Shown piece by piece: positions 38-61,804 of a DNA stretch of 64,000 nt. The notes under the pieces are model-generated. The model did not search any database. It worked only from the letters and a program-made list of their open reading frames with translations, and had not been told where the DNA came from. How positions within the stretch are numbered: the first letter of the stretch is position 1; each line of letters begins with the position of its first letter. The translations under genes were made by a program, and so were the position numbers. The DNA is from Bugula neritina (Eukaryota; Animalia; Bryozoa). The stretch spans positions 372,001 to 436,000 of the forward strand of contig OZ037772.1 in the NCBI GenBank assembly GCA_964035545.1, in the 5' to 3' direction.

Positions 38-611
38 AGTGGTGTCCCACCTTCTTCATACCATTCCCCTTTTTATAAATGTTTTCTATTAAGTTTCCCC
101 CCTTTTGAGAAACACTGTAACTTATATTCATAAAGAAAATCAGGGTACAGATTTTTTCCAGAAAAGGCCAGTGTGTTTGACATGGACCAGTGTCTGCCAC
201 AGCTTCAGTTTAGCTTTGAAAGCATTGATGCTGGTATCAAAAGCAGTGAGTTGATGATTATACTCATTCATTTTAGGTTCAGAGTTTATAGTACAGCAAA
301 TATATCTACTAGGTATTCAGGAAATATTTTATGGAGATCAGTTTGACTGGCTGCAACAAATTCCTGTTAGTTTTTGCTTTCAAGAAACTTTTTAACCTCC
401 ATTCGTAGTAGGAAGGGTAGCAGCTAGAGTAGAAAAGGAAAAGGCACTTTGTGTTTGACATGGACCAGTGTCTGCCACAACTTGAGTTTAGTTATAGTTA
501 TACATATACATGTAACCTGGAAAACAAGGCAAGAGCTCAAAGAAATGAAACCCCTGAAAAGCCCAAATTCCCTGCAAGGGGAATTCCCCCCCCCAAGGTT
601 GGGAGCCACTG
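38..611. mobile_element. hAT-like non-autonomous element in a TRIM intron (related ends at ~26955, ~31215, ~34013)
   Basis: Ends CAGTGGTGTCCCAC and GTTGGGAGCCACTG resemble CAGTGGTTCCCAA-type hAT TIRs; the internal sequence recurs at ~31080-31215. Confidence 0.45.
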
Positions 612-779
612 CTGTGATTAATGAGCTAACCTGTGAAATATTTCTAGTCCAACCAACTGTCTAGTTATCACATAGTATGTGTATAGTGATACATCATCAA
701 CCTGTAGTTAGAAGTATAGTAGGTGCAGAATAAGTACAATATCATATCTTTTATGGATCGTGTGATTTTATGTATACAG

Positions 780-3700
780 AGGAGACAGTAGCATCCCATG
801 ACTTGGCATCTTTGAGTGATTTGTCTTGTGAGTTACGAGAAAGTCTGACTGGTGGAATAGAGACTCTGTCTGAGAAAGTTGCAGAGTTGAATGACATCTC
901 AAAGGATGCCTGGAAAGAACTGAGTAAAATAGAAGATGAAGTGAAGAAGATGGTTGCCAGAGTAAACTCTGTAGCTGACGCTCAGGTATGCTGACATGAT
1001 GATGTCATCTAATGTATTTCTGTTTGTCTGAAATTAGGTTTTGCATGTGGTCTTTGAGTTGTAAATAGAAATGAATTCCATTTGCCACTAGAATTAACTG
1101 GCCATTAAAGCTTTATCATTCTGTGTACAAGTAGCAGTAGTCATTCATCACATGTTACTCAGTGCAGAGGAACCTGTCAATACAGATGACTCACTCATCC
1201 TTCTGCAACTGTCAATCACTCACACACAGAGAGGTTGGCTGTGTGAGTGATTGACAGGTGTCAGGAGGAGGAGACTAGTCACGTGATGTACTAGCTCTCT
1301 GCTGTGTATAGAGTGTCACGTGACTGAGTCATTGTCCACTCAGTGGGTGATCTGTTATTTTCATTTCAAGTGTAGAGGTTGTGAGGTGCAGATGTGGTTA
1401 CGCTGTGTTACTATTTATTAGATAGAAAAGATTAGAAAGAGAGCTACAAACCTGAGGCTAGAAATATATGGATATTTGAAGAGCTGCACACAGAAAGTGG
1501 ATAATTATAGAATAGAGCTGGCCTTGAGTAAGACAATGGGCAGACAGTCTCTGCTGGACACAGTGCAACATGCAGTTGATAAGTTCAATGATGCAGGGAT
1601 TGTGAGAGACTACAAAGAGATGAGTGAGAAGATGGAAAAGGCTACAGATATTGGTGTAATAGAGAAGTGTGTACTTCCAGACAGCATCTTGGTGCCAACA
1701 TGTAGGTGGAGTCTATAAATAGTAACACTAACTATAAATAACTTTCTGCTTGTAATTAGTTGAGTTGTTTTCACTGAATATTTTAATAGTAGAATAAGTA
1801 GATAGAGTTTATTTATTAGAGAATTGAGTTTTATTCTACTCTCACATTATGAGACATTTCTGCAGTGTTTCAGAGTTTATGATGTATAAGTGAGCTGCTA
1901 AACTGTGTTATGCTGACTACCTGCTGTCAGTATTAACAAGATATTCTCACTTAGACCTGTGCATCACGTAGCAACTTGTAGTAACTACAGACTGCTTGTA
2001 TTTAAAACATCTTTTTATTTTAAGTTTGAAAAGCTGTTCCCACCTCCTCAGGTGATGAGATTCCCAAGTTATAGAATTGTTATTTTGTTGTTGCAGACAG
2101 TGAAGACAGTCTGGGACTGAAGCTGCTGCAGCCACCATCTTCTCTACAGTCTGATGGACTTCCTGTACGTGACTTGTGTGGCTCAGTAAACATCTCAGCT
2201 GATGGACATCTTATGTGTGTGACACCAGGAGGTGTAGAAGTAATAAATAGAGACACTCTGGATACTATCAGCTCAGTGAAACACACCAACACTACAGGGT
2301 GGTGGGAGATAATCCAACCTGAAGGGGTGATGGTTGGCAGCTGGTATAACAGAGAGGAGAAAACAGCTGAAGTCTCACTTCTTGATCCGAACTCCTTTGA
2401 GAAGACTCGCTCTCTCTACAAGCAGCCATTAAATGTACCCTTCCCCACTTACTATAGAATAACTCAGCACGACTCACTGCTCTATATTGTAGACAATAGA
2501 GAGAAACAGCTGGTAGTCTGTAATCTAGTTGACAATAAAATGCAGAAGTTCCCACTTCCTGAGATGGAGTTCCCTGACCCTGTATGCATCCTCCCAGACT
2601 CAACTCTCCTCATAGGAGACTGGACTGAAGATGGTGCAGTGAGAAGATACAAAGTGGAGAACACAACTCTCTCTCTAATGTGGGAGTTTCCTCACATCTC
2701 ACATCCAACTGGTATTTCCTTTGATCCAACATCTGAACTGATTCACATCTGTACAGCATATGGACCTCTCCTCATCCTCTCACTTGAAGGTAAATACTGT
2801 GTTTATTATAGTAAGTTTAGTTATTTTATATATAATTATGTTGTAGTAAATAATATATTTTAATAATTAACAGTAAACAACTCCCACTCATAAGATATAT
2901 TATGACATTGTTAGTATTTATCAAGTCGCTGAGGTTATTTTTAGCTAAAAGTTATGTAATAAAGACTGTAACATGCTGATAGTAGATGTTATATTCTTCA
3001 TCACATGACTTGTAGCTAATAATAATATTAGTGAATAATACTGCCTCCCTGCAATAAGTTTATTTCCAGCTGCAGTAACATGCAGGATGTAAGCACAGGT
3101 AAAAGTGTATATTATATTGTATAGGTTTAAGGTGTACTCTGTGTAGTGTGCAGTGAGCTCTTAGTAAACTCTCTATTCAGTCTTCCTTTCCAAGGGTTCA
3201 CCTGGTAGTGTAGAGGATAGGGACTCCACACTGCTGAGTGAGTTGGTGCTGCAAGGGGTTTAAACCCACCTATCAGCATGTCTAATTAGTATACTATGCA
3301 AGTGTTTTACAGTAATTTTAGAGGTGCTCAGTCTAACAACTGTACAGACTGCCAGCTACACATGAGTTATGAGTTGTAGTTTGACTTCAGTCTAGTGCTG
3401 CTGTTGTTTTGGTCATCAGATAATTTAATTATAAATAATTTGATACTTTTTGACTGCCATTGCTGAGACTAGTGTAATTTGATGATGGCTGGTAGAGCAG
3501 TGTTTGCTGGTGGGACTCAGGTGGCCGTGGTTGGTTCTTGTTAAGTATTTTATATGTGATAATGTTGGAGTAGCTGCAGTAGTATTAGAAGTAGACATGT
3601 GGGTGTGTCCTTGCTCAGAGCCACAGGCTAAGTTTGTGGGTCAAGGTCAATACAGTTGTATAATAAGATATTATTTTCTGCTGTTTGAGTATTTACTTCA

Positions 3701-3927
3701 TGCATATAACCTGCTGAGTTCCATCTTTAAAGGCAGTCTGTCTGTTTCTCTCAATACACACCAACTGATACAATATGATGCTATTATTTACAGGTCAACT
3801 GGTGCTTACTGTTCCCAGAGAAAGTCTTGGTGTGAGTGCCGAGGTGTGGGACATTGCTGTGTATAACAGAGACACAGTGTTTCTAGCATGTCAAGATGGT
3901 CTGAAGAGATACACAATAAAATACTAA
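780..3927 (+). CDS. TRIM-NHL-like protein, copy 1, 3' exons (780-985, 1422-1701, 2097-2789, 3794-3927); RING/B-box exons lie upstream of the window
   Basis: GT-AG exons join in frame. Two coiled-coil exons are followed by a propeller with NHL-like blade motifs (PDPVCILPDSTLLIGD, PTGISFDPTSELIHIC), ending ...YTIKY-TAA. Paralog of 30225-37367. Confidence 0.85.
3200..3280 (+). mobile_element. Possible tRNA-derived SINE head (copy ~36638-36718)
   Basis: A-box-like TAGTGTAGAGG and B-box-like GGTTCAAACCC (in copy 2); no complete cloverleaf. Confidence 0.3.
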
Positions 3928-4647
3928 ACTTATCAGCTACAGTTTACTAATATTCAGCTCAGTGAGGTGCTGAGAGATAAAATGGATAATATTTGTCATC
4001 AACATAATTATATTCATTACAATTCATCAATACACACACTCTGTAATTATAGTTGGATATGAGATGTTTTACTTTATCAAATATATGTTGCTATTTTACC
4101 ATCTAATAAAGTTTATTTGTTAGCGAAAACATAGTCTGTTTTCATGCCTCATTAGCTTTAGTTCAAGTTGAGTTTGGTTAGTAAAAATAATCTATACTGG
4201 AGCAGTAACTGTAAATGACTTGTTTGTGGGAGAATTTGTTCACTGAATTGACATGCAGGTGCAAGTACCTCCAACATGACTAAGTAAATTTATTCCAACC
4301 ATTCATAATAATATACATTCCATTGCTGTGTACAACAGCATTGAGTAGCCAATCAAATTGTTTCTTGTCATGCAATCAGGAATCTGATAAATAATATATA
4401 AGGCAATCAACTAGATATAAACACTGTATTACTCTACACATGAGCTGTCTATGTTACAGCTGTTTTGTAAACTGTGTGTAATTTGATGAGTTTAGTTCAA
4501 TTGGTTGCAGTTTAATTATGACATGTTCCCCATTCACCTGGTAGAAATACCTTGTGTGCACAGACAAGTTGTAATGACTAACAGAAACTTTTTCAGTAGG
4601 TTCCAGTTCATCTTGAATATAGTACAGCTTGTTGTCATTTGGTCTCC

Positions 4648-5213
4648 ATAGTATTGATGGTACACTACCTTGTTTGGCCTCAATAGTATTGATAGTATAC
4701 TACCTTGTTTGGCCTCAATAGTATTGATGGTAGACTACCTTGTTTAGCCTCACTAGTATTGATGGTACACTACCTTGTCTGGCCTTAATATTATAGATGG
4801 TATATTACCTTGTTTGGCTTCAATAGTATTGATGGTAGACTACCTTGTTTAGCCTCACTAGTATTGATGGTACACTACCTTGTCTGGCCTTAATATTATA
4901 GATGGTACATTACCTTGTTTGGCCTCAATAGTATTGATGGTATACTACCTTGTTTGGCCTCAATAGTATTGGTGGTAGACTACCTTGTTTGGCCTCAATA
5001 GTATTGATGGTATACTACCTTGTTTGGCCTCAATAGTATTGATGGTATACTACTTTGTTTGGCCTCAATAGTGTTGATGGTAGACTACCTTGTTTAGCCT
5101 CAATAGTATAGATGGTACACTACCTTGTTTGGCCTCAATAGTATTGATGGTATACTACTTTGTTTGGCCCTAATAGTATAGATGGTACACTACCTTGTTT
5201 GGCCTCAATAGTC
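4648..5213. repeat. 35-bp minisatellite, ~16 units (~25 units at 38097-38974)
   Basis: Unit TAGTATTGATGGTACACTACCTTGTTTGGCCTCAA, head to tail. Confidence 0.95.
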
Positions 5214-5763
5214 TTGCTAACAGCACAACTTACAAGATTCAACTAATTTAACTTGTTGAGATTTACATGAATATAATACATATGAAATGTGAAAATAGCA
5301 TTAAAAGTCAAGCAAGGAATTCACATGTTGACACAATTATATACTTTCACTTGAAGGTAAGCTTGATGAACCAATATGAACTGCTCACAGAGTTTACTGT
5401 GTAGGATTAGTACCTAGAATATTTAGTTACATCAGAGCTAAGTGAAAAATCTAACAGTTGATTTATTCTGTTGAAAGTTAATGTGTTGAGTATTGATCTT
5501 ATTACCCAACTTCACCCTTTTTACTGTAGAGTTTGTTGATGTAAGTTCACCTAATTAAACTATCCTCATGCAAGGGGTGGGGGTGGAATATAATTGTGAA
5601 TTTATGCTTTACTTGTTATTATAGGGTCTATTTAGGCAAAGCTATTTCACCAGGTTTGTGATTGCTAACACTTTATTCTATTTATTTCAAGATACTAATA
5701 AAACTGTACAACTATCAAAAACACGTTCCATAATAAGAGAGAGAATATACAAGACTTTACAAT

Positions 5764-7528: not shown

Positions 7529-8146
7529 TGACAGCGCTTCTTCATAGGATCTGCCAGTCACCCAGTAGTTGTTGTCACTAAACTATGTAAAATATATAGA
7601 AGTTAAAAGGTCACTAAACTATGTGAAATATATAGAGGTCAAGAGGTCACTAGACTATGTGAAATATATAGAGGTAAAGAGGTCACCAGACTATCACCAA
7701 CTTTCCATGTACCGATCTCAGATCGATCTCAGCGAGATCGATCCATGGAAAGACGCCAAAGATCGATCTCCGCCGATCTGAGCTCGTCGGTCGGTGGAGC
7801 TCGAACTCAGATCGATCTCATGTCAATAAGACCATGGAAAGACACCAGATCGATCTGAGAAGTAGAAAAAGACTGCGTGCTACAATGTTGTCTGCTAATA
7901 AAAATGATAACTTATTGATAATTACTAAGCAAAGTATTAAATAATCATGATAGCCGCCTTTTCAGATGCCAAAACTTTGACTTTCAGTACAATGATTAAG
8001 AAAACTCAATTATATGCAGAAGAAGGTAAAAAAAAATGGGAGAATTTAAATTGAGTTCAAATGACTATATTAAAACTCAGTTTCATTAGCTATTTCCTTT
8101 GTAATTTTAAGCCTAACAGTCCTGTAAGTTTATTAATAATCTGCAA

Positions 8147-8322
8147 GGGCCACACCCACTCCCGAAAGGGCCACACCCACTCCAGAAAGGGCCACACCCA
8201 CTCCAGAAAGGGCCACACCCACTCCAGAAAGGGCCACACTTACTCCAGAAAGGGTCACACCCACTCCAGAAAGGGCCACACCCACTTCAGAAAAGGCCAC
8301 ACCCACTTCAGAAATGGCCACA
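8147..8322. repeat. 21-bp minisatellite, ~8 units (~25 units at 41399-41928)
   Basis: Unit GGGCCACACCCACTCCAGAAA, in a ValRS intron. Confidence 0.95.
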
Positions 8323-9332: not shown

Positions 9333-10583
9333 CAAGTAAACATGACTAGAAACAGTTCAGGATCTAACTGGACGTGTATGAAGAAAATGTAATGGAACCT
9401 GTAGAAATCTAACAAGTTGGGATAAGATTGTAGAGAGAAGACGACTCACCTACATACAGGAACTGCCATAGGGTTGTCTTCCTTTCCTTTGTATAGCCCC
9501 AAGTCTTCCAACCTTTTATGAACACCTGCACATAAAACTTACACAGAGTATAAATTGCTAATAGGCTCACACCTGTCACCTGCTTACAAATGTCACCTGC
9601 TCACACCTGTCACCTGTACACACCTGTCACCTGTACACAAATGGTATTAAACCACTAAAACCTATGTAGATCAATATTTTCTTGCTATTAAGTTGACTAA
9701 TTGTGAAACAGCCAAAATAGGAAAATAAGACCTTGTAGTGCAGTGAGCAAGGCAAGTTCAAGCCATACAACTTTAACATGTTGCATTACAGAAGAAAGAC
9801 CTGCTTCATTTTGGTAAATAACTATAAGTAATATTGGGAGTTACGCCACCTATGAGTAACAACATGGAGTTGTGTTTCTTTTCATAAACGCAAAAAGGTA
9901 AAAGTTACTTGTTCCTTCGAGGTAGCATATATAATGCAAGGAAAAACCATCTCAACTTAGAAATATGTCACACATTTAGGAGTTATGCCACCTCCTTGTC
10001 AGCAACACGGAATACTAGTTTCACACACCTTTTCATTTCCACAAACTCGCCGAAGTCTCCACATATTAACCCGTCATCGTCAATGATTGTGAGGAAGGGG
10101 AGTTTGTGTCAGAGGCCAACGTCGTAATTCTTGGGATCATGTGAGGGGGTTATCTTCACCGCCCCTATCGACAATTAGATGGGAAGTGAGAAGCTCTGAG
10201 GCTATGAATATTACAAACAGTACTCGTTGCTATACGAATAGACTCCAATATAGTTCTCCCTCCGTATCTCAGTAAGGGACCTGAAACCTCAATTCATGAC
10301 ACAGTAGAATTCTTACCATAGCAGAATACCATATTTAACACACGGATCTGTTAATTTAAACTATTTTGTCCCAATACACATAACATAAGTCACAAAACAA
10401 AGGACCAAGCCATTCTCATGACCTGGGGTATTTCATGAGAACTAGAAACATAAGATATAGTGGAAGCACTGCCCCAAACAAAACAAATCAAATGAAATGA
10501 TAGTTTAGTGATGGAAATAATTAGTTAATAGTCTTTGAAAATAGTTGGGCCGGTCAACTTCTGAAATTACCATGTAAGAAACA

Positions 10584-11526
10584 CAACAGGCTATGAATAT
10601 ACAGGACAACAGGCTATGAATATACAGGACAACAGGCTATGACTATACAGGACAACAGGCTATGAATATACAGGACATCAGGCTATGAATATACATGACA
10701 ACAGGCTATGACTATACAGGACAACAGGCTATGAATATACAGGACAACAGGCTATGAATATACAGGACAACAGGCAATGAATATACAGGACAACAGGCTA
10801 TGAATATACAAGACAACAGGCTAAGAATATACAGGACAACAGGCTATGAATATACAGGACAACAGGCTATGAATATACTGGACAACAGGCTATGAATATA
10901 CAGGACAACAGGCTATGAATATACAGGACAACAGGCTATGACTATACAGGACAACAGGCTATGAATATACAGGACAACAGGCTATGAATATACAGGACAA
11001 CAGGCTATGAATATACAGGACAATAGGCTATGAATATACAGGACAATAGGCTATGAATATACAGGACAACAGGCTATGAATATACAGGACAACAGGCTAT
11101 GAATATACAGGATAACAGGCTATGATTATACAGGACAACAGGCTATGAATATACAGGACAACAGGCTATGAATATACAGGACAACAGGCTATGAATATAC
11201 AGGACAATAGGCTATGAATATATAGGACAACAGGCTATGAATATACAGGACAACAGGCTATGAATATACAGGACAATAGGCTATGAATATACAGGACAAC
11301 AGGCTAGGAATATACAGGACAACAGGCTATGAATATACAGGACAACAGGCTATGAATATACAGGACAACAGGCTATGAATAAACAGGACAACAGGCTATG
11401 AATATACAGGACAACAGGCTATGAATATAGAGGACAACAGGCTATGAATATACAGGACAACAGGCTATGAATATACAGGACAACAGGCTATGAATATACA
11501 GGACAACAGGCTATGAATATACAGGA
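10584..11526. repeat. 23-bp minisatellite, ~41 units (~12 units at 43877-44158)
   Basis: Unit CAACAGGCTATGAATATACAGGA. Confidence 0.95.
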
Positions 11527-14500
11527 AACAGAGCACCTGTCCCAAACTCCATCTCCACAAAGTGGTCAGCCACAATAGGTATTCTCCTGTCAGCAAAAGG
11601 ATGTCTCACGAATTTCCCGTGTAAGTGTTTGTATCGGCCGTCTTCAGGGTGGACAGCCACGGCAGTGTCACCTACAATAGTTACCAGACTTTATAGTCTC
11701 TCACAGTATTGAGTATTGATATACAATTATATATTTACTGAGTGTTTACCAGATCCAACTTCACAGTCACTATACTCAGAGTACACAACTCCCAGTAAGT
11801 TAGTATCAAGCTAATTAACCACTAACCCCCTATTCACACTTACCGTATCGTACGCCGTAACAGCAAATATCAGCCATTTTTATGAATGTCTGAGCTTCCT
11901 GTCCGGTGTTGCGGTACGGTAGGATCAAGCACTGCTTGATTCAAGTAAGTTGCGGCGGACTCCTATTGGACAGAAAAACTTTTGCGTTAATTCATTGGAT
12001 AAAAATGTCTAATGTAGCGTCATAGATCGTACCTAATAGCGGACTTTGAAAACTTCAACCCGCACCTTAAACCAAAATGGAATAATAAAATTAAAGAACT
12101 TAGGCTATCTCAAGTTCTCCACTACTGCTCCTAAGTGAGAAAGTAAGAATAGTTAGAGAGATCTACTGGAGTTATTTCAACTGGCAGCAAGAGTCAGCCA
12201 TTATTACGTTGCTAAGCAACAAAGCTATTAGTGACATTGATGTCTACTAACTCAACATAGTTTCTAATCTAGTTGTGGCCACAATGATTTCTTCGTCAGA
12301 GTCTTACACTTTATATGCAAAGGAAAGGAGAACTCCGAACTCCACCTTCTCCTTGTAGCCAGGCACAGAGAGCATAGTCCTTCCTGTCAACTCTACTTTG
12401 TCTACCTGCAATCAGTGATACAACTCTCTCAGACTATACAGGTCAAAGGTTAAACTGTAGTGTGTGCTTCTGAGTCACTGCGTTCTCATTCTTTTCTATT
12501 AGTTCACATTGTGTAAATGGATGCTCGTACGAATGAATATGTGGCTGTGGTCTCATTGATGTATTCATTCGAAGATGGTCATAATGTAATATATCAGGCT
12601 GTGTCTGAATACTACTATTAGGTTAGTTACCACCAACACACAAGTCTCGCAGTGAATAAACAGTTGACGTGCACACAGCAGGGAGTCAGACTGATACTGT
12701 ACAATATACCTCAATATCAGAGATGGCAGAGTTGAGAGTACAGGACCAGTTGACGAGTCGGTTAGCTCTGTAGATCACACCTTTCTCGTGCATTCTGATA
12801 AACGCTTCGTTCACCGCTTTCAAAGATTTCTAATAAACAATTATATATTAGTCATGTGTCAAGTGTGAACTGATTGGAAACAAGGCCTCATGATTAACCA
12901 ATCATAGAGAGGATAACACACTGAGTCAGTAAACAGTCGACACGGCATATAGACTCCACTACTCAAACATAATACATGTATAGAGAGGATAACTCCTCAC
13001 CTCATCCACAGTGAACGTAGTTCTGTCCCAGTCATAAGACCGGCCCACTTTCCTCAACTGATGGTAGATTCTGTCTCCTTTTCTATAGAAATTATATAAT
13101 AACACTGACCAATCGTTGTGCTGCAAAACTTAGTTATATTACCAACTTAAATAATGAGTCCAATGATATAGTGTGATGAAGTAAACCTATATTTAACTTT
13201 TTGTATATTCAATTATATATATTAATTTTATCATATTATCATATATATTATATATTATCTTATATCAAACTGTAGCAACTGCACACCAATAAGATAAAAT
13301 AAAAACTCAAACCCGAATACTAAGTCGCCATGAAATGCATTTTCAAGATAAAATATTCCCTTACTGGTTCTTCCAGTCCCACACTCGTCTCACAAACTCA
13401 TCTCGTCCCAAATCGTGTCGAGTTTTATTCTCTTCTCTAGCGAGTTTTTTCTCGACGACAACTTGAGTGGCTATTCCTGCGTAGTCACATCCGGGTACAA
13501 ACAGTGTCACCTTCCCATTCATCCGGTGCTTGTCAATACAACAGAACTGACACCTGCAGACACCTGACAGACAAGCATATCAGACACCTGTAGATATTCT
13601 GGAAAGGTGCTGAGAGAAATATCTGTGGTTGAACCAACATCAATATAATAGATGAATGACTTATGCCAACCGGTACTTGACACAAATTTTATCAGCATTC
13701 AAAAGAGAATTAACAGGGGGATGTTCATAGCCTGTCTGTGGAATATCTCAAAGTGACTTGGCAAGATGCCGAAATGTCATGTAGTCACCACCAGAGGAAT
13801 GGTGTCTACTGTTACATGCTATAAGCTACATACACCACCAGTTTAGTGACTAGGTAAGTACGGAGTTGTCTCATCTATATGAATGAACATCTCACCACCG
13901 AACTATCGCATCCTCAACCGCCCCCGTGAGGGCGTGTCCTAGGTGAAGAGTCCCGGTCACATTAGGGGGAGGGATCAGGATGATAAACTTCTCTTCAGGT
14001 GTGAGTTTCAGCACATCTCTACCTGTTACAAAGCAACCAATCACATCTCTCTCGGTTACAAAGTAAAAAGCAACCAATCACAGTACCTGTTACAAGAGAG
14101 TAACAAATCACACCTCTACGTGTTAGAAGTAACCAATCACACATTATAGACTTTACTATGATGAGAAGTGTACCCTTGAGATTATACTCAGGTTTGAAGA
14201 ATCCTTCCTTCTCCCACCAAGAGTACCAGGCAGCTTCCACATAGGACGGGGAGTAAGAACCAGGCATGGGACACGTCGTGTCTAGAATAACAGAAAACTA
14301 TAAAGTATAGGGGGGCAGCTGTGGTCTAGGGGTTAGAGCGTTTGTCTAGTGAACACGAAGCCATTGTTTGACAAAGGCCATTGGTGACGTTAGAAAGAGT
14401 ATCTAGTCATAATTGCTCCTGTGCCACATCTAAAAAAGTCCTTAGCCTGTTTTAACAAAAATGCTTTCCACCAGGAGTCTCTCACAAGGATGGTGACTAT

Positions 14501-19977: not shown

Positions 19978-20854
19978 ACCCTGAGAACTGTGCGTGTGGC
20001 TTCACCTGCGAGTGTGTTGGGGTATGTGACCTTGACAGAGACTGTGGGAAGCTGCAGATCTGTTTGGAGAAAAGATGTTATCAGCAGGCCTCACCAGATG
20101 ACAGAACTGTTGTTTATGATCTTTATCACTCAGAACTAGTAGAACGTTCTTCAGGTTTGAATGCGAAATCTTTGTTCTAAACTCTATTAGAGTTTAAAAG
20201 TGTTGCTTTCTGTTGTACTTATATCTGTGCTGGCCAGGATTTTTGAATGATTTTTGTTATGTATTTACGTAACAGAGTGTAAACTGAATTTGCTTTATTT
20301 TCTACATATTTTGGTTTGCGATTTTTCAGTAGAAACGAGGCATCACACTCGGTGTGATTATCAGCATTTTTTGCAGGTGCTTCTATCTGTGTACTGACAA
20401 CACATCATGTCCTAGTGATGGACAAATCTGTCACCATGGTGTCTGTAAAGAGGGCTGTCAGGTGAGTAGTCGCTATGACCTACACTGCGAGTTATTGATG
20501 ACTTTCATACTATGAGTTATGACTACCTACTATAATTTATACTGCGAGTCCAAGTAGCTGCTGTAACTTATGCTGTGAGTCATGACTAACTGATATCACT
20601 TATACTGTGAGTCAATTATCAAAAATAGAGATATGTTGTGTATGTGAGATATGTGAGGTTATTTAGTGACTAGTTCGCTATTTATAGAGTTTTGTTTCTA
20701 TTAATAGACTGTACTGAAGATGAACAATGTGGATCTGAGTTTACTGAATGCATATCCAACATATGCTATCAGCTTTATCCTCTCAACGATCCAGATCTTT
20801 CTGATGCTGAGCAGGACAGACTCTTTGATGATCGGCTGGACCTACAGAATGATG
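19978..20854 (+). pseudogene. Cys-rich repeat exons (19978-~20154, 20377-20461, 20708-20854), probable N-terminal part of the collagen
   Basis: Splice-bounded exons encode CDLDRDCGKLQICLEKRC, CTDNTSCPSDGQICHHGVC and CTEDEQCGSEFTECISNIC. They are on the same strand directly upstream of the Gly-X-Y exons; linkage to the collagen is inferred. Confidence 0.55.
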
Positions 20855-20858
20855 GTAA

Positions 20859-21117
20859 GTTACTCTGTTAGTACAGTTACTCTGTTAGTATAATTACTCT
20901 GTTAGTATAGTTACTCTGTTAGTACAGTTACTCTGTTAGTATAGTTACTCTGTTAGTATAGTTACTCTGTTAGTACAGTTACTCTGTTAGTATAGTTACT
21001 CTGTTAGTATAGTTACTCTGTTAGTATAATTACTCTGTTAGTATAGTTACTCTGTTAGTATAGTTACTCTGTTAGTATAGTTACTCTGTTAGTATAATTA
21101 CTCTGTTAGTATAGTTA
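20859..21117. repeat. 17-bp minisatellite (longer copy at 54147-54675)
   Basis: Unit GTTACTCTGTTAGTATA. Confidence 0.95.
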
Positions 21118-21980
21118 CAGTAAAAGTTTGCTAGTCATAATAACTTGCACTGTTAGTTGCTCGACAAGTTATTCTACTTCTCTTGTAGCCACAACCAAAG
21201 TGGTGTCTATATATTCTGCTAGTGACTTGAGTAATGACTCATATGTAATTGTAATTAATTACATATCTAATGTAATTGATTTTTGCAATTACTTTACAAT
21301 TACATCTCAATTACTTTAAACTTTTAAATCTTAAAATCTTAAGAAATTTATTCTTTTTTAGCATGACTACTGTTAAATAACAAGTACAGATTAAGTCAAT
21401 GTAGTATAGTATCACTTTTGCGAACAAAGCACGTTCACCACTGTCAAAATTGCCCCTGCTAGGTGGACCCTAGAGGTGAAATTGCATAACTTCCATTTGT
21501 CCTTTGTGAGAACAAAAGTAATTGTAATTGTAATTATTTGCATTGCCATGTAATTGTAATTAATTGCTTTACAATGTAGTTTTGTACTGTAATTAATTAC
21601 ATTTATTTCAACTGTAATTATAATTGTAATTGTAATTGACAAATTCTCATGTAATTGTAATTAGTTACATTCACATGTAATTGACCCCAACCCTGGTTTA
21701 TTATGGAGCTCATACTTTTATTGTTCAAGGTCTAGATGTATTCTCCACCATGTTTTTACTAGAAGTAAACTTTAATTCCGTAATAAGTTTAAAATAAACT
21801 GTTGTTTCGCCTTGTACAGTTTACTATTGCCTGAATATTCTATTGAGAATATTGGCTTAACAATTCCAGTGCAGCGATGTGATTGGCCTGACAATATCAA
21901 AGTAGTGATGTGATTGGCTACTCTGTTCTGTTTTGCAGGGCCATGCCTACTTGTATTATGTGTTAATCTTGTTTTGCAGT

Positions 21981-24900
21981 GAACAGAAAGGGATAATGGG
22001 TCCCAAAAGACACCCGGGATCTTACCATGGAGAGGAAGGGTTCACCCGATGTTGATGGCCTGCCTGGTATATCCGGCAATCCTGGAGATGCAGGAGAAAG
22101 GAGACCACCTTGTTTGTCAGGAGATACCGGACTTTTTGGAGAACCAGGTAATGTTTATGCTCAATTGAGTTTAATCTGTCAAGTTATGTTGGGATCTTTT
22201 TCGTTTTCGTTATTTTATGTTTGTTACGTGGAAAAAGGAACAAACTCTGTCTTGGAGCATTTTGGTTTTTTCAGAGAGCTTTGGATTATTTGATTATGGT
22301 CTACACAGGGGTGTAGACAAACTAAACTAGACAGGGGTGTAGACAAACTAAACTAGACAGGGGTGTAGACAGACTAAACTACATAGGGGTGTAGACAGAC
22401 TAAACAACACAGGGGTGTAAACAGACTAAACTACACTGGGGTGTACACAGACTAAGCTTGACAGGGGCGTAGACAGACTAAACTACATAGGGGTGTAGAC
22501 AGACAAAACTTACTACAAACTTATAACTACCTTGTGTCATGCCGTCATGACATCTTTATTCTCTCCTATAATATGACCTTTATTTAGCGAGCAGATTTCT
22601 AGTAGGCTATTCTATAGTGGCCAGTCACACTGTTTATTATAGCAACATAGAAATCAAATTGAAAACTAGTTGCACCTGTTGTGATGCTATCAATGGGTGC
22701 TTACAGGTAGAGACGGAGTACCTGGACCTGTTGAGATCGGTTATCAGGGTAAACAAGGAGATCAAGGTCCTGCAGGTAAGAATGAGGAGTTACTCACCCT
22801 TGCTTGTGTATTTCTGTTCTTTTTAGGTATTCTATAATATGCTGGGGTTTCCCTCACAGCTATTATATATGCTGGAATTCCCCTCACACCTATGATATAT
22901 GCCGGGGTTTCCCTCACAGCTATGCTATATGCTGGGGTTTCCCTCACAGCTATTATATATGCTGGAATTCCCCTCACACCTATGCTATATGCCGGGGTTT
23001 CCCTCACAGATATTCTATATGCTGGGGTTTCCCTCACAGATATGCTATATGCTGGGGTTCTCCTCACAGCTAGTCTGCACTAAGGCAGGGAGTAGGCTAA
23101 GTAATCATATTGAATCCCAGCAGTGATTGTTACTTCAACTGGCAGGATTACTGTGTATGATAGTTGCTCTGACTGGTTTCCATGGATCATTTTTACCATA
23201 TTGTTTGCCACATGATGCATTGTCTTAGTAAAAACAAGAAAACAAAGAAATATACCAGAAATGTTGAGAATTGTGGTGTTCCAGAATTAATAAATGACCA
23301 CTTGTAATGCGTACTGGTGCTGCTTGGTTCATAGGACCTGTCGAACAAGCTGGAGAACCTGGTCTGGATGGCAGAAATGGAAAGACAGGAGAAACTGCAG
23401 GAACTGGTATGCCTGGTCCAACTGGCTCAAGGGGGGTCACTGGAGAACCCGGATCTGATGGAAGGTAATATTTGTGCTTTACTCTACCCTATTCAGCTTC
23501 TTGGAACTTTTTATTTCATTTAGTTTTTATAATTTGTTGTCAATTTTTTCAGAGTTGGTTTACCTGGAGTACTGGGTGCTGATGGTAAACCTGGGGAGCA
23601 GGGTGATCAAGGACCTCCTGGCCCCATGAGTCCAGTGGGAATCCCCGGTAACCAGGGACCTGAAGGTGCTCAAGGAGACAAGGGTGATAAGGCAGGAACA
23701 TTCTTTATTCAGTTTTCTTTTTATTTCAGTTCTCTGGTTTTCCACTAGTCAATCCTGTAGTTGTTTATTTGTTTTAGTTTATTTATGTTAATACTAGAGT
23801 TGCTTCAGTGACACCACATCATGCAATATATTACACAACAGTACAGTATAATACACCATAATATAATATGTTATACAATACAATAATATTACAGAAAATA
23901 TAATTCAATAATATCTCACAGCTAAGGCGTGTCTCCTAAATATATTCATTACTATAGGGGCCAGCTGGGCCACAGGGTGCTTCTGGACCAACTGGATTGT
24001 CCGGACCGGCGGGTCCACGTGGGCCAACTGGTCCTCAGAGACCCCAGGGAGCTAAGGGAATTCCCGGCGAACAAGGACCTAAAGGTATGAATGAAGTTGA
24101 ACCAATCTTTGTCCTTAGTTATTGGCCATCAACAGAATCATGGCTCTAAGAGTTTTCCTACCTGGTAAGAAGATAAGGCAACTCCTAACTCATGATAATA
24201 TGAATGGTGCTGCTGTTGTAAGACCCACTGGTTTCCAGGGACCTCAGGGATTTCCCAGATCTCCCGGTATTGATGGTGAAAGGGGAGATGTCGGATCACT
24301 TGGTATTGCTGGACCACCCGGGCTACTGGGTGATGATGGCAAACAAGGGATAACTGGTTCTCCTGGTGCTATGGGTCTACCTGGACCTGATGGTGCTAAG
24401 GTAAACACTTACACTCACGCTCACACACGCATGCACTTACACTGTTAGCAGGTTATTGTTATTCATCTTGTTAGTTTAGTTGTAATAAACCAATAGTCTG
24501 TATTTCTAGGGTGAACAAGGGAGAGTTGGGGAAATGGGTGGTCCTGGCAGTCCTGGACCTCCTGGTAAAGCCCAGTATTTGGTTAGTTATTAGCAAATCA
24601 TTGTTCATCACTTGTATCTTTTTTTATTTCTTTTCAACTGTGTATTGATGATCTTTTGGGAATTTCATTCATAGCCTGTGATTGAAGCTTTTATTTTATT
24701 CTACCATGGGTTATGTTAGGTGCTCCCCCTATGATGATGAGTGCAATGATGTCCAACGGTAAAGGTGTACAAGCAGATGATGCAGGCGCCAACAATGAGC
24801 TCTATAATATGTACCTCAGTGAGTAATGGCCATGATGTGCTTTGATGTTGCCCGCTTTGTAGCAGAAAGGCTCTTTGAATGCTGTTTTGGAACTCAAATG

Positions 24901-26287
24901 ACAGACTTGTTTCAAATTGTTTGTATGTTTAATTTGCAGACAAACAATTTCATAATCAACTGCTAGAAACTATTGTAATAAAAATATAGACAGCTGTTAT
25001 AATGTGTTTCTCCTCCTAGCATTAATGAGTAGCATTCTTGTTTGATGAGTCACCTAATTAGTTCGTTTCTTCAGTTAAATGTTGCTACATTCTGACAGAT
25101 TATATAATGTTGGTTTCGTTGCTGTTAGCTTACATCACTACTTACACCTTATTTCTCTAGAAACATAGGTAAGGGATGGTACAATTTATACTGTGTATTA
25201 TATACTGTTAGTTATATTGTGAAATAGAGAAGTTGTATTCTCTATTGTTTGTTGTCAGGTGGATCCAGATGGTGGCTCCATAGCTAATGCTATCCAGGCT
25301 TACTGTCGCAAGGAAATGAAGAGCACTTGTATCAATGCCAAGAACTCCGAGTTTGCTACCAAATCGTACGTCACCCAGCAGCTAGATAATCAGCCATTCA
25401 TTGCTAAACACATGGGAACAGCACTTGTAAGTGTTTATCTTGTATCAACCACGACTGTCTTAGTAATAGTCAAGAATATTCAAAAGTTTTATGTTGAGAA
25501 TTGTCGCTATAGTAACATATTTGTTTACTGTATGGATGTTGATAAGTATTGCTATAGTAACGTGTTGGTTTCCTGTATGGATGTTGCTAGTCACCAGATA
25601 CTAGTTCTCTACTATGTTGCTAGGCACTTGATAATCTGAACAATCACTGGCTTCTTCTTAAGCTGAGCGAGTTGTTGGTATGACTATTCCTTTTGCTGAT
25701 TGTAGATGTATAAACTCAGTGGCGGTAGAAGATGCATTCGGTGGGAAGAAAAAGTCAGTCATTTTATATACAGCTGGTGAAAAAGAATACACAGCGACAG
25801 TCAGCAGGCTCCAATCTTCCGTGCTGCAGGATGATTGCAAGGTATGTAAATCTAACCTGTATATAGTGTAAATCTGATCTATATACTGTAAATCTGACCT
25901 ATAAAGTGTAAATCTGACCCATATAGTGTGAATCTGACCTATAAAGTGTTAATCTAACCTATATAGCGTAAATTCTACCTACATATGAACATGATTGCGA
26001 TAGTTGCATCTTTTTGTATTGATATACAATATAGCTTGCCTTTGAGGCTTTTTAACAACTACTAATGAGTTCAACCCAAAAGCACTTTGATTTCTGTGCA
26101 AGTTTAGAGTTTTGAGTTTGCCCTCTGCCATTTTGTAGAATTCCAAATACCATCAGAAGCTCTGACAGTGATTGAGATTTACACCAAGACCACCACCCAC
26201 TTGCCTATTATTGACATTGCTCCTGGTGACATCGGGACCACCCACAAAGAGTTTGGGGTTCAGCTTGGAGAAGTCTGCTTTTCATAG
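21981..26287 (+). pseudogene. Fibrillar collagen pseudogene (Gly-X-Y exons plus COLFI C-propeptide), copy 1
   Basis: Gly-X-Y exons (~21981-22148, 22707-22775, ~23335-23464, ~23553-23690, 23958-24084, ~24222-24400, 24510-24564); telopeptide QADDA; COLFI motifs VDPDGGSIANAIQAYC, CINSVA..DDC and [36 protein letters not shown]. Many Gly replacements, frameshifts and missing COLFI segments. Confidence 0.88.
22303..23071. repeat. 25-bp (22303-22505) and 30-bp (22836-23071) minisatellites in collagen introns; copies at ~63393-63545 and 63895-64000
   Basis: Units ACAGGGGTGTAGACAGACTAAACTA and TATGCTGGGGTTTCCCTCACAGCTATTATA. Confidence 0.9.
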
Positions 26288-29541: not shown

Positions 29542-30224
29542 ATCATGCATCACCAACACTGCAGAAATGTTGAAATGAATTTTGTCATTTAGATTATGGA
29601 GAAAACAAAGTATTTTCAACACCCAGCACAAAATATTTCATGAAACTATGTTTTCTCCCACTGCTATGTTTCCCCCTATTTTGTGTCTTAGCGTGAGCCC
29701 ACGCAATGTATCTAGCCCAAAAATGGGCAGGTAACATTGTAAAAATGGCTGATATTTCTGAATAAGGGGATAAGCAGCTGAGCCCAATTGTGCTGTTTGT
29801 TCATAAAAGTAATACATAACTCACTGGTATTCATGTTTCACTTCTCCTCTATATATTAGAAACACTTGATTATTGATGTTCAATAGAAGTAGAATAAAAG
29901 TGTTCACTGAAGCACACAACATTGCTTCATATTTACTGTATATGGAGTTTGAGTCACCAGCAAAAACCTATTCAGTGATTACAATGGAAACAATACAGCC
30001 TTTGTTAGAGAGTTAAAGCTGTGAGCTCAGCATGTTGTAGCTGACTATCATGTATACCAGTGTTATTAACTGCCTTTGTTTAACATTATTTTTCATGTCT
30101 TTATTTTGTATGGTTTATTGTTAATGGTTAAGTCTTTGATTGGGAAACCTTCACATATGCAGTGTGAAATATTATGCTAAGAGAATGTGTATCTTTTACA
30201 GCATTTCCTTATCATATAACCAAG

Positions 30225-33200
30225 ATGGCAGAATCCAGAGTTGTGAAAAAGAGACTAAACAATTCGTATCGCTGTGGGTACTGCTCGCAGTACTTCAACA
30301 AACTTGAAGATCCCAGAACTCTGCCATGTCTGCATGTGTACTGCATGAGATGTTTGAAGACTGACATCGGTGGTAGGAAGGATCATATCAGATGTGCTTA
30401 TTGTAGGTGAGTTACAGTACATAACACAATATATCATGTCGTAGGCTTGCGTATGATTTTCTCACTATCATCTAGGAGTTGTCTGGTCTATGTCTATGAA
30501 AAGCAAACAATACTGTGTATTCTATGTGAACTCTGGTTACCAACTTGTGGAGTGTGTGGATATCTTCTCATTAGGTAGAGAAAGTAACTGTTATGTAGAT
30601 TGCATCATCAGCTGTCCTCTCTTGTTGAATTGGGTATACTGTTGGATGTCATGGGATTGGGGTTGTCTCCTCATTATATTATTTTGTTCTCATACAGTAC
30701 AATACTTGTTAGACCAACCTTTTTCATATCATTCCCACTTTCATAAATGTTTACTATTGATTATCCCCCCTTTATAAAAAACGAAAAAATTTATGACTGA
30801 CATAATGATAATATAGATTACTATGCAATATTTTTTCTATTACATTTGAATATAATATAATTATTTCTGATAATTATATTGTACATGTATAAAACACAGA
30901 GCAGTTCAATTATTAATATTATGGCTGCAGCTGATGACATTGTGTCAGCTTGCTTTCCAATCGCCCACCCCAACCCTTAAACCCCAACCCCAATATTGAA
31001 ATTAAAACACATTCATGTAGAAGTAGACTGAGAAGGCAGAATTGGTTAAATAGATAAGCTAAGATGAATGCTTATAGATATACATGTACATGTAACTTGC
31101 AAGAGCTCAAAAGTCTTTACAAACTGCTTGAAATTTTCAAAATCGAAATCCAGGCTCCCCCCTAAAAAGCCCGAATTCCCTCTTATAGGGGGATTCTCCC
31201 AGGTTGGGAACCATTGTGTTGAATTGACTTGTGTTTACTATCTCCTTTCCTGTGATTATAAACATGTATGATGTTGTCATGACAACAGAGTTGCTGTGGC
31301 ACAAAGTACAGTTTACTAGTATGTAGTGATTGTGTAGTGAGAGTGGAGTGTCTGGTTATTGTCCATGGTTATGTGTAATCTGTAAGGAGTAGAATTATAT
31401 TATTTTAATATAATGTTGAGAGAGGTACTTTTATAATGGCAGTTTGCTCAATAGTTTTAGTTCTAATGCAATAGACTCATAGCTCTGGAGTCTAGCAGCT
31501 GCTACTATTACCACTAGCTGTTCAAAATTCGGCCAACATCCGGGCTGCCAAACCATAATAGCCATTGGCAAGGCCAAGCAGTCACTGAGAAATTATTTGA
31601 CTAAAGAGCAGGTCTTATGACAATTAGTAGTCAGTCCCTTAGACAGGAAACAGTGATTCTGTGACCTATGTAGTTAAATCCATTGCTGAACTTTTGATTG
31701 ATTATTAGATAGCCATCACAATTGTGTTTGGTGGTAAGTTGTACAATATAATATTATGGGGTGTCAATCAGTGTCTAATATAATCTGTGAATTGAGTGTC
31801 TCCTTTAGCTTTGATGAGTTGATTACTTTGTACTGAGTCATGAATAGTGTTGAGGATTTGGGCCTTTATTATGCCAACCCCCCCCCTCTGACTTAAACTG
31901 TGACCCAACCTGCTGCACATACATAGTAGTACTACACTGAAGATAGTTAACATGTGTATATATCATATACATATATATATAACATATATATATACATGCA
32001 TATATCATCCTACTAGTAATGGATTACTAAGTACAACTTATCCTATGACTCACTTTTCTTATGCTAGCTGCACGAGATAGACAACACACACGTGACACGC
32101 ACTCACAGTGCACTAGCTCTTGACACATTGCCAAGGATGATGAAATGACAGTTTCGCGCCACTCCTAGCAGTTAGAGTGGCAGGGAATAGTTGTAGTATG
32201 TTGTAGTATTGACTTCAGAATTCACACCTCAGTAAGTAGTTGCATTGCACAAACTTGCAACAAAAGTGAATAATTATTGACAATATGGCCTCCACTCAGT
32301 AGTTAACTAGTAATTTGTCTTGTAATTTTACTCTACAAGTTACAGTTGAGTCTATTTGTTGAGTAGCAGTTCTTTGTCATGAGTGACTATTTTCCAGCAT
32401 ATTAAGTACATAATATAGTCAAGTGTGTTTGTGTGATAGCCTGTGGTCTATATAATGAATGTGTGTTGATGGGTGATGAGTATTTATTTGAGTATTTGTC
32501 AAGGACATAGCTGTGTGTGTGGATGGAGTATTTCATCACTTGAGATATACTAAACACAGCTAACACAGGTAACATACTGATTGCTATATATTGTAGGAAA
32601 GATCACTATGACATCACGGATCCCACAACACTACCAGTAGCTCAGCATGGAGACCCCTTAGAATACAAGTCTCCACCCAAACCTGCACCCATTCCCTGCG
32701 ATGTTTGTAAAGGTGGAACTGAAGCTGCTGTGTTTTGTGTCGACAGTCAAAAGAAATTGTGTCAGCAGCATCAAGAAGTGAGTCTTTCTTATATAATTTC
32801 TCAAGATTAGTTACTAAACCAGTTCTGGTTTGTATGTAGAATATTATTGAAAAGAAATGTTGAGTCTGTGTGACTTTTTATACTAAACACACAGTTTCAC
32901 AGTGCAGTGAGTCAACTATGACAGACTTGTTGGTGAAAATACAACCAACTAAACTGTTGACCTTTATTATACAGAATCACAGAGAGCTGATGGGAGATAG
33001 ACATCAGTTTATTGACATTGAGGTCTACAGAGCTTCTCCCCAAAGATATACTATAACTGAGTGTGAACATCATAAACAGGAACAGCTGACAGAAGTGTGT
33101 TCCAAGTGTCACCAGATATTCTGTATGAGATGTGATATGAAGACTGGCTGTAAGGATAAGACAGGTATTTACTTGCTGTTTCTATTTCTGTAGAAAGAAA

Positions 33201-36200: not shown

Positions 36201-37367
36201 GACCTCTCCTCATCCTCTCACTTGAAGGTAAATACTCTGTTTATTATAGTAAGTTTAGTTACTTTATATATAATTATGTTGTAGTAAATAATATATTTTA
36301 ATAATTAACAGTAAACAACTTCCACTCATAAGATATATTATGATATTGTTAGTATTTATCAAGTCACTGATGTTATTTTTAGCTAAAAGTTATGTAATAA
36401 AGACTGTAACATGCTGATAGTAGATGTTATATTCTTCATCACATGACTTGTAGCTAATAATAATATTAGTGAATAATACTGCCTCCCTACAATAAGTTTA
36501 TTTCCAGCTGCAGTAACATGCAGGATGTAAGCACAGGTAAAAGTGTATATTATATTGTATAGGTTTAAGGTGTACTCTGTGTAGTGTGCAGTGAGCTCTT
36601 AGTAAACTCTCTATTCACTCTTCCTTTCCAAGGGTTCACCTGGTAGTGTAGAGGATAGGGACTCCGCACTGCTAAGTGAGTTGGTGCTGCAAGGGGTTCA
36701 AACCCACCTATCAGCATGTCTAGTTAGTATACTATGCAAGTGTTTTACAGTAATTTTAGAGGTGCTCAGTCTAACAACTGTGCAGACTGCCAGCTACACA
36801 TGAGTTATGAGTTGTAGTTTGACTTCAGTCTAGTGCTGCTATTGTTTTGGTCATCAGATAATTTAAATATAAATAATTTGATACTTTTGACTGCCATTGC
36901 TGAGACTATTGTAACTTGATGATGGCTGGTAGAGCAGTGTTTGCTGGTGGGACTCAGGTAGCTGTGGTTGGTTCTTGTCATGTATTTAATATGTGATAAT
37001 GTTAAAGTAGCTGCAGTGGTATTAGAAGTAGACATGTGGGTGTGTTCTTGCTCAGAGCCACAGGCTGAGTTTGTGGGTCAAGGTCAATACAGTTGTATAA
37101 GGAGACAGTATTTTCTGCTGTTTGAATATTTACTTCATGCATATAACCTGCTTAGTTCCATCTTTAAAGGCAGCCTGTCTGTTTCTCTCAATACACACCA
37201 ACTGATACAATATGATGCTATTATTTACAGGTCAACTGGTGCTTACTGTTCCCAGAGAAAGTCTTGGTGTGAGTGGCGAGGTGTGGGACATTGCTGTGTA
37301 TAACAGAGACACAGTGTTTCTAGCAGGTGGAGATGATGGACTGAGGAGATACACAATAAAATACTAA
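30225..37367 (+). CDS. TRIM (RING-BB1-BB2-coiled coil-NHL-like propeller) E3 ligase, copy 2, ~621 aa; exons 30225-30406, 32597-32777, 32975-33164, 34223-34428, 34863-35142, 35538-36227, 37231-37367
   Basis: C3HC4 RING CGYC..LPCLHVYCMRC..CAYC; B-box1 CDVC..FCVDSQKKLCQQH; B-box2 CEHH..VCSKCHQIFCMRC. All six introns are GT-AG with matching phases; exon total 1866 nt with no internal stop. Confidence 0.88.
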
Positions 37368-50904: not shown

Positions 50905-51094
50905 TGTTTGTCTCTTTCTCTATCTATATATTGTTTTTCTCAAGTTTTTTAAAACGATATCTATAAAAAACACATTATTATTTATACCTCTGCATGTTTA
51001 GTCTATTAGGAGGTTTGCTTAGTCTCCCCCGTCTAGTATGCGTAATTTCTCCTTGTTCAGGAGGAAATAACTTGCTGTCATTGCAATCATATAG

Positions 51095-61768: not shown

Positions 61769-61804
61769 CTTACTCCCTGACTAGGGGCATTTGTATTAAG
61801 TGTG

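Follow-up and report, generated by a model that had tools for sequence, protein, structure and literature searches.

The 64,000-nucleotide stretch of the bryozoan Bugula neritina analysed here (assembly GCA_964035545.1, contig OZ037772.1, positions 372,001 to 436,000 of the forward strand; called the window, and numbered from its first letter) carries two copies, A and B, of a gene encoding a RING, two probable B-boxes, a putative coiled coil and a divergent six-bladed NHL-type propeller. They belong to a large family in the same genome, in which the RING end is nearly invariant and some 25 codons of the main propeller exon change far faster than neutral expectation. We read it as a large, expressed, germline family of TRIM-type E3 ubiquitin ligases, whose propeller face would serve as a recognition repertoire diversified by selection together with exchange between copies; the probability of this reading is put at roughly 0.6. 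The excess of replacement changes is only moderately significant in the window pair alone, and across 70 paralogs it is overwhelming.

The two gene copies in the window

The window is a 33.4-kb direct segmental duplication, in which 1-23000 matches 33383-64000 at 93-97% identity. The two genes had been called tandem in an earlier description made from the letters alone (the sequence-only reading), and they do lie 33.4 kb apart inside this duplication. Copy B is complete within the window. Copy A has its last four exons there, and its RING and B-box exons lie upstream, with the RING at contig C8:368829-369008, 3.2 kb before the window. The exons and their evidence are as follows, where pN/pS is the ratio of replacement to silent differences per site.

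780-985, plus strand: copy A coiled-coil exon 1 (GT..AG joint 985>1422 in RNA runs X1, X7 and X18)
1422-1701, plus strand: copy A coiled-coil exon 2 (joints 985>1422 and 1701>2097; family pN/pS 0.65)
2097-2789, plus strand: copy A propeller exon, linker and blades 1-5 (splice joints, AlphaFold2 model)
3794-3927, plus strand: copy A last exon, end of blade 5 and blade 6 (joint 2789>3794; stop codon TAA at 3925-3927)
30225-30406, plus strand: copy B exon 1, start codon and RING finger (Pfam zf-RING_UBOX)
32597-32777, plus strand: copy B exon 2, B-box 1 (partial zf-B_box match, Cys/His pattern)
32975-33164, plus strand: copy B exon 3, B-box 2 (partial zf-B_box match; exon end spliced onward in RNA contigs)
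34223-34428, plus strand: copy B coiled-coil exon 1 (alignment to copy A)
34863-35142, plus strand: copy B coiled-coil exon 2 (alignment to copy A)
35538-36227, plus strand: copy B propeller exon, 690 nucleotides (comparison with copy A)
37231-37367, plus strand: copy B last exon, 137 nucleotides (stop at 37365-37367)

The TRIM N-terminus proposed in the sequence-only reading is borne out in its RING. In the interval 30174-30410 the RING scores above the Pfam cut-offs (PF13445, zf-RING_UBOX, 30.5 bits with a cut-off of 25.2; PF00097, 22.5 bits with a cut-off of 21). The two B-boxes are probable from Cys/His ligand patterns visible in both exons and from partial matches to PF00643 (zf-B_box) of 23.0 bits for B-box 2 and 14.6 bits for B-box 1; these scores are below the cut-off of 24.1 because each of the separate exons holds only part of the domain. 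The putative coiled-coil region gives only weak matches to coiled-coil families such as DUF1664, Prefoldin and bZIP (E 0.002 to 0.1).

How different are the two copies? With 610-4200 aligned to 34044-37640, the mismatch is 3.5% in intron 1, 1.5% (6/392) in intron 2 and 3.4% in intron 3, 1.0% and 1.8% in the coiled-coil exons, and 5.9% in the propeller exon. The propeller exon of copy A has a split codon at either end and 230 in-frame codons (2099-2788). Its codon alignment with copy B (35540-36226) gives 34 codons unlike, 31 by replacement and 3 silent (CTT/CTG, AAA/AAG and TAC/TAT), together with one in-frame codon indel (FPTY vs FLY). In the coiled-coil exons there are 2 and 5 nucleotide differences, amounting to 5 amino-acid and 2 silent changes, and the last exon has CQ in one copy and GGD in the other. 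These counts agree closely with those of the sequence-only reading: about 31 replacement and 3 silent codons with one indel were recounted exactly, about 6 of 395 nucleotides in the upstream intron became 6 of 392 on alignment, and the five or so amino-acid changes in the coiled-coil exons and the CQ/GGD change were found again. The exon borders given there, 2097 and 2789, coincide with GT..AG splice joints in RNA contigs. By the Nei-Gojobori method the propeller exons have S=159, N=528, Sd=5 and Nd=37, that is pS=0.031 and pN=0.070, a ratio of 2.3. For this single pair, Fisher's test gives p=0.089 for replacement against silent sites, and p=1e-4 for replacement sites against the three introns (55/1825 = 3.0%).

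A large family with a constant RING

In the 216-Mb assembly to which the window belongs, the propeller exon is matched at least 119 times. The first 4.4 Mb of the window's contig contain about 60 full-length copies, roughly 20-150 kb apart, and other clusters are found on C3 (15.6-16.3 Mb), C2 (0.25-0.84 Mb), C1 and C4. The family has at least about 100 copies; among the genome-wide matches, a few members carry stop codons. The family analysis below used 70 copies with 1.5-kb flanks, whose propeller exons are 79-89% identical, leaving out about 20 more distant copies on contigs C1, C4, C5, C6 and C9. The propeller exon is open in 70 of the 70 copies, its AG/GT splice sites are kept, and its length varies by whole codons only. 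The constant RING effector suggested by the sequence-only reading is seen on the genome scale: 53 genomic copies share the 60-residue RING exon at 100% identity, and about 20 others match it at 97-98%.

RING exons are also dense at other places in the genome (C8, 6.6-7.2 and 9.3-9.4 Mb; C6, 1.45-1.6 Mb; C4, 23.35-23.4 Mb). They are only 31-44% identical to the RING of the TRIM-NHL family, and their dense clusters indicate further large RING or TRIM-like candidate arrays.

Diversifying selection at a small set of codons

Amino-acid entropy along the propeller exon shows a near-invariant framework broken by positions with up to 15 residues. Some 25 codons of the large propeller exon, with another 6 or so in the last exon, take 5-15 amino acids each, and the 25-residue hypervariable haplotype is unique in 69 of the 70 copies. 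Is this diversity driven by selection? Over 1711 pairs the whole-exon pN/pS of the propeller is 1.16, with a value above 1 in 71% of pairs, and the coiled-coil exons have 0.47 and 0.65. For a comparison that avoids assumptions on trees and ancestral states, the 70 copies were joined into 35 non-overlapping nearest pairs by intron distance alone. Over these pairs the intron divergence is 0.040, pS 0.054 and pN 0.068. After Bonferroni correction 25 codons stand above the neutral expectation, and they hold 57% of all replacement differences; their pN of 0.35 exceeds the overall pS 6.5-fold and the intron divergence 8.8-fold. The remaining 218 codons have a ratio of 0.70.

The same result was obtained with our own codon site model of the GY94 type, which used F3x4 frequencies, kept the iqtree topology fixed, scaled branch lengths proportionally and reconstructed no ancestral states. 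M0 gives a replacement-to-silent rate ratio ω of 1.66, and M2a is preferred to M1a with twice the log-likelihood difference (2ΔlnL) of 1527, the selected class having ω2=11.6 for 8.1% of sites. Among the 18 sites with posterior above 0.95, 17 are also in the list from pair counting. Thus the family-wide ratio above 1 that the sequence-only reading had predicted is found by pairwise counts, by the 35 pairs and by M2a vs M1a alike.

A local mutational hotspot was considered as the source of the variation and is not supported. Where two copies have the same amino acid, their codons are unlike at 4.8% of hypervariable and 3.3% of framework sites (p=0.23); silent rates are therefore normal at the hypervariable codons, and a hotspot is unlikely. 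The framework has a transition-to-transversion ratio of 1.39 and the introns one of 1.43, and at hypervariable sites the ratio drops to 0.68. Such a transversion bias is as expected if radical replacements are favoured. Residues enriched at hypervariable sites are Arg (4.7-fold) and Trp (5.4-fold); many states are acidic, Glu making up 9.6%.

Position of the variable sites on the propeller

The hypervariable codons of the large exon fall into ten patches, given here with copy A coordinates and with their places in the predicted fold; the two last-exon patches come from the entropy of 62 intact last exons.

2174-2185, plus strand: patch 1 (residues 26, 28, 29), loop before strand A, blade 1
2219-2230, plus strand: patch 2 (residues 41, 43, 44), B-C loop, blade 1
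2282-2305, plus strand: patch 3 (residues 62, 67, 69), D-A junction, blades 1-2
2342-2362, plus strand: patch 4 (residues 82, 85, 88), end of strand B and B-C loop, blade 2
2426-2449, plus strand: patch 5 (residues 110, 113, 114, 117; codon indel), D-A loop, blades 2-3
2495-2500, plus strand: patch 6 (residues 133, 134), B-C loop, blade 3
2570-2578, plus strand: patch 7 (residues 158, 160), D-A loop, blades 3-4
2621-2629, plus strand: patch 8 (residues 175, 177), B-C loop, blade 4
2702-2710, plus strand: patch 9 (residues 202, 204), D-A loop, blades 4-5
2756-2761, plus strand: patch 10 (residues 220, 221), B-C loop, blade 5
3838-3849 and 3889-3897, plus strand: two hypervariable patches of the last exon

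The spacing of the ten patches alternates between about 17 and about 27 residues. The last-exon patches keep the same spacing, which gives two patches per blade over six blades.

What is the fold of this domain? The Pfam NHL model (PF01436) has no match to the propeller of either copy with E up to 10, and a sequence profile search of the PDB gives weak matches only, to designed 'Pizza' six-bladed propellers (E 0.004). Among 1.84 billion representative proteins, a profile built from 33 copies detects no more than 28 relatives. Exon-sized open reading frames on metagenome contigs come closest, and the distant relatives (E 2e-9 to 1e-3) carry Pfam NHL repeats; the profile reaches the PF01436 proteins P0016 (E=2e-9, with its own NHL at E 2e-25), P0018, P0022 and P0025. 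In a feature search of the ESM Atlas, PF01436 NHL is present in 31 of the best 100 clusters, the top three included (score 0.94, 172-173 shared features). For the propeller exon, an AlphaFold2 model built from an alignment of paralogs and profile-search relatives is confident; it has a predicted local distance difference test score (pLDDT) of 89.4 and a predicted template modelling score (pTM) of 0.84, with 19 strands in four-stranded blades. Plain Foldseek ranking mixes NHL and WD40 propellers, and the top VIA structural matches are NHL domains of TRIM proteins, 8j72, 6fq3 and 4zlr among them. By predicted fold and remote profile links, the C-terminal domain is an NHL-type propeller, with four-stranded blades and six of them when the last exon is counted. 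The NHL propeller of the sequence-only reading stands on these two lines, and a direct Pfam NHL match was not obtained.

All 10 patches lie at the start of strand A, at the end of strand D or in the B-C turn, and none falls in the nine A-B or C-D loops. With random placement among the 19 loops the chance of this is about 1 in 92,000. The D-A and B-C loops of the model would together form one face, the 'top' face by which known NHL domains bind RNA or protein. It had been expected that the variable sites would map to one face, and their restriction to D-A and B-C loops agrees with this by strand topology.

Probable short exchange between paralogs

Selection describes which changes are kept, but how did the diversity arise so quickly? 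Copies with an intron divergence of 0.23% already differ by 27% at the hypervariable sites, and by 2-3% intron divergence these differences saturate at the random level (0.70, with 0.716 expected). In the youngest pairs exon change exceeds the prediction from introns, at silent sites too: the youngest duplicates have 7 silent exon changes, with about 1.6 expected from intron divergence. For example in the pair L017/L034 the introns are unlike at 4 of 1391 positions and the exon has 24 replacement and 3 silent changes; several of them are two-nucleotide codon swaps, and nearly every variant codon is present in other copies. Three adjacent codons (QPL vs HSV) switch jointly in several pairs, the window pair included. 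Association between hypervariable sites is found only within three codons and is gone beyond about ten. The pairwise homoplasy index (PHI) test for recombination is borderline (p=0.045), and 44% of informative site pairs are incompatible.

Two kinds of exchange find no support. Long conversion tracts are one of them: association is only patch-sized, and long identical hypervariable runs in copies with distant introns are only slightly commoner than in column shuffles. Exchange from blade to blade, as in the fungal HNWD genes, is the other, since no internal DNA repeats were found between the blades of one gene. The blades within a gene are dissimilar in DNA, and therefore any exchange would have to be between homologous positions of different genes. 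Patchwise exchange between paralogs is what probably adds to selection here. Short exchange of this kind is likely without being proven, since part of the pattern could also come from recurrent mutation at sites where few states are accessible.

A possible mechanism combines the two processes. Point mutation under positive diversifying selection would supply the loop diversity, and short, patch-sized gene conversion between paralogs would redistribute the loop variants, with the near-identical framework of the paralogs offering the homology. Short exchange would explain why the patches are almost unlinked, and why duplicates with 0.2-0.3% intron divergence are unlike at a quarter of their hypervariable sites.

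Expression

The GT..AG joints 985>1422, 1701>2097 and 2789>3794 are present in contigs over 700-4100 from three RNA runs, each from a different study and one primed with oligo-dT. In these runs exon depth is 10-100 times intron depth. A DNA-like run has flat depth over 700-4100 and none of the three splice joints. The RNA contigs also have a loose end at 776, where the B-box 2 exon is spliced straight to the first coiled-coil exon. As the contigs were placed at 90% likeness, what is spliced and transcribed is the family, not necessarily copies A and B themselves. Spliced transcripts of the family in three RNA runs thus agree with the expression that the sequence-only reading had presumed.

At most 42% of the sampled 31-letter words of the copy A propeller exon occur in any public run (X1-X20), DNA-like runs labelled with this organism included. 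In the DNA-like run X3, T stands at 2650 in every contig, and the private silent C of copy A is absent. The low word coverage is compatible with strong differences between individuals; it could also come from contig building in multi-copy families.

Other features of the window

An exon-like sequence is duplicated twice upstream of the first coiled-coil exon (160-240 and 445-490 in copy A, 33560-33640 and 33825-33880 in copy B). It has an open frame followed by a GT donor and is skipped in the RNA contigs, which join B-box 2 to 780. In intron 1 of both copies (1190-1330; 34640-34790) a conserved, imperfect inverted repeat some 25 bases long stands before a palindromic CACGTG pair; this may be a regulatory site or a small foldback element. 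Both duplicated units have four minisatellites at matching places, with periods near 35, 21, 23 and 17 bases and unequal copy numbers:

4638-5216 (unit A) and 38086-38979 (unit B)
8145-8322 (unit A) and 41397-41928 (unit B)
10580-11531 (unit A) and 43859-44163 (unit B)
20849-21118 (unit A) and 54146-54694 (unit B)

A long terminal repeat (LTR) retroelement is present in the copy B unit only (54676-62234, minus strand). Its 411-bp direct repeats (54676-55086 and 61824-62234) are 100% identical, and its open frame of 1524 amino acids (56373-60947) resembles the protease, reverse transcriptase, RNase H and integrase of the Ty3/gypsy type. A second insertion at 49314-53434 has identical 213-bp direct repeats (49314-49526 and 53222-53434) and minus-strand open reading frames with CCHC zinc knuckles, which look gag-like. 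Between the two TRIM genes are exons of a putative fibrillar-collagen-like gene (23300-25640, plus strand), with Gly-X-Y open reading frames (Pfam Collagen, 36.8 bits) and a fragment of the COLFI C-terminal domain (26.0 bits).

Function and alternative explanations

What might such a family do? The protein is probably cytosolic, because it begins at the RING and has no signal or membrane segment in the exons seen. By analogy, its most likely task would be recognition of diverse, fast-changing intracellular targets followed by ubiquitination, and a role in immunity or non-self recognition is suggested on the same ground. Each copy would bind its own intracellular ligand via the propeller face, and the ligand would then be marked, or a signal sent, via the constant RING; the array would be a repertoire against fast-evolving targets, for instance foreign cells, intracellular microbes, viruses or mobile elements. 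As targets, proteins of viruses or microbes, RNAs of viruses or transposons, and conspecific molecules are not distinguished by the data.

Several points weigh against this reading and should be noticed. Placement of the RNA contigs at 90% likeness gives expression at the level of the family, not per copy. The propeller lacks a Pfam NHL match, its model spans five of the six blades, and the single face is derived from strand topology, not from measured coordinates. The codon-model test was implemented by us and used one tree, its branch lengths scaled from a nucleotide tree, and recombination inflates tests such as M2a vs M1a; the effect size and the agreement with tree-free counts are reassuring despite this inflation. 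The PHI test is borderline, and recurrent point mutation at few sites could mimic the sharing of variants. Ligand binding, ubiquitin-ligase activity and a response to infection or to allogeneic contact are argued by analogy.

Could the pattern arise without positive selection? Decaying pseudogenes, relaxed constraint or an assembly artefact (uncollapsed haplotypes or mis-joined repeats) would be extremely improbable sources. A 33-kb duplication at 93-97% identity does look haplotig-like, and a few members do carry stop codons, but two haplotypes cannot yield more than 100 copies in which 69 of 70 haplotypes are unique, and decay is at odds with 70 open exons of 70, kept splice sites, lengths in multiples of three, a RING invariant in 53 copies, a framework ratio of 0.70 and spliced transcripts. 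Moreover, the hypervariable sites are far above the neutral rate, not at it. Gene conversion or recombination alone, mixing old divergent alleles, is very improbable as the source of the replacement excess. It would fit the surplus of silent changes in very young duplicates (7 where about 1.6 are expected), the two-nucleotide codon swaps common to other copies and the incompatible site pairs (44%). However, conversion cannot create a replacement rate 6.5 times the silent one at 25 codons while silent sites stay at background, nor confine variation to one set of loops, and it is already contradicted by the pair counts, the silent-rate test and M2a vs M1a. The sequence-only reading had named gene conversion as an explanation that would defeat selection. 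The data suggest instead that exchange goes alongside selection, and exchange alone cannot give a replacement rate 6-9 times the silent one.

If selection acts, who is the selective agent? The ligands may be RNAs, the array then being a set of sequence-specific RNA binders against viral or transposon transcripts, in the manner of Brat, LIN-41/TRIM71 and Mei-P26. The closest structures come from TRIM proteins whose NHL domains bind RNA, some of them solved with RNA on that face (8j72, 6fq3, 4zlr), Arg and Trp are enriched at the hypervariable sites, and young LTR retroelements lie inside the array. Yet the many acidic states, with Glu at 9.6%, disfavour RNA binding by every copy, and Arg, Trp and Tyr are equally typical of the hot spots of protein interfaces, so we regard RNA ligands as unlikely. 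Still more unlikely, in our judgement, is a conspecific agent, such as allorecognition, gamete or self-incompatibility, or intragenomic conflict, with the copies kept by balancing selection. The word coverage of at most 42% for copy A in any run and the variant at 2650 missing in X3 hint at large differences between individuals, but contig-based runs cannot measure polymorphism. A cytosolic protein could meet foreign cells only after fusion, and more than 100 loci far exceed the known animal allorecognition systems. Such an agent would be in line with the fungal HNWD genes, which have the same pattern of variable propeller-face residues together with exchange (PMC1805685).

The reading of a recognition repertoire shaped by selection and exchange also admits a more specific scenario, which we put forward tentatively and rather doubt. 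The array might be a germline combinatorial receptor, in which frequent homology-guided exchanges of very short length keep about a dozen loop cassettes per gene close to linkage equilibrium over more than 100 paralogs, so that the repertoire is reshuffled within 0.2-2% neutral divergence and is very unlike between individuals.

Relation to known systems

Among known proteins, the TRIM-NHL class VII or subfamily C (TRIM2, TRIM3, TRIM32, TRIM71/LIN-41, Brat, Mei-P26, Thin/Abba and NHL-2) has the order of RING, B-box, coiled coil and six-bladed NHL that is predicted for the family here. It gives the best structural matches, and the ligand face of its known domains is the face predicted to be variable here. 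However, class VII genes are single-copy, slowly evolving developmental regulators, while the family here has at least 100 copies with a hypervariable face; it has no filamin domain, its NHL repeats are too divergent for PF01436, and its relatives are very few (28 among 1.84 billion representative proteins).

Another comparison is with finTRIM, btr and trim35 of teleosts and TRIM5alpha and TRIM22 of primates, which are tandem-multiplied TRIM ligases with a conserved RBCC part (RING, B-box, coiled coil) and positively selected hypervariable C-terminal loops (PMC3137616). The array, with its invariant E3 end, a coiled coil that would dimerise and a hypervariable putative ligand face, has in common with them the logic of a constant effector and a variable sensor, and it likewise shows positive selection in loops with a conserved RBCC part. 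The sensor of finTRIM and TRIM5alpha is a B30.2 (PRY-SPRY) beta-sandwich, whereas at its C-terminus the array has a predicted propeller in place of a B30.2 domain. Some of these proteins have a documented or supported antiviral role; for the array such a role would be by analogy only. The copy number of the array is as large or larger, and its variable sites are more sharply confined.

A third system is the HNWD genes of Podospora anserina (het-d, het-e and het-r, NACHT-WD40), where a few residues per blade are under diversifying selection with exchange within the family (PMC1805685; PMC2873952). The beta-propeller, the variable residues on its interaction face and the exchange among members are alike. 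The differences are that HNWD are about 10 fungal genes of NACHT-WD40 type, while the array is RING-NHL, and that near-identical blades are swapped within and between HNWD genes, while the blades of one gene are dissimilar in the array. No description of hypervariable TRIM-NHL genes was found in a literature search, which was incomplete, and the genome paper of the species could hold one. A variable-receptor role of the NHL propeller may thus be previously undescribed; as part of the combinatorial scenario, this is offered with the same reserve.

The diversified TRIM sensors known from vertebrates use B30.2, and fungal NLR-like allorecognition genes supply the known cases of a hypervariable propeller face; the array would join both. 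The TRIM-NHL scaffold, otherwise a conserved developmental RNA regulator, has here at least 100 members with about 30 hypervariable positions on the putative ligand face and an invariant ligase end. If it is a recognition repertoire, it would give a tractable example of a large intracellular repertoire of specificities in animals without adaptive immunity, a natural library of propeller binding surfaces, and a case of selection and short-tract exchange keeping binding-site cassettes shuffled. And if the combinatorial scenario were true, the array would be an invertebrate, intracellular, RING-coupled counterpart of the variable immune receptor families.

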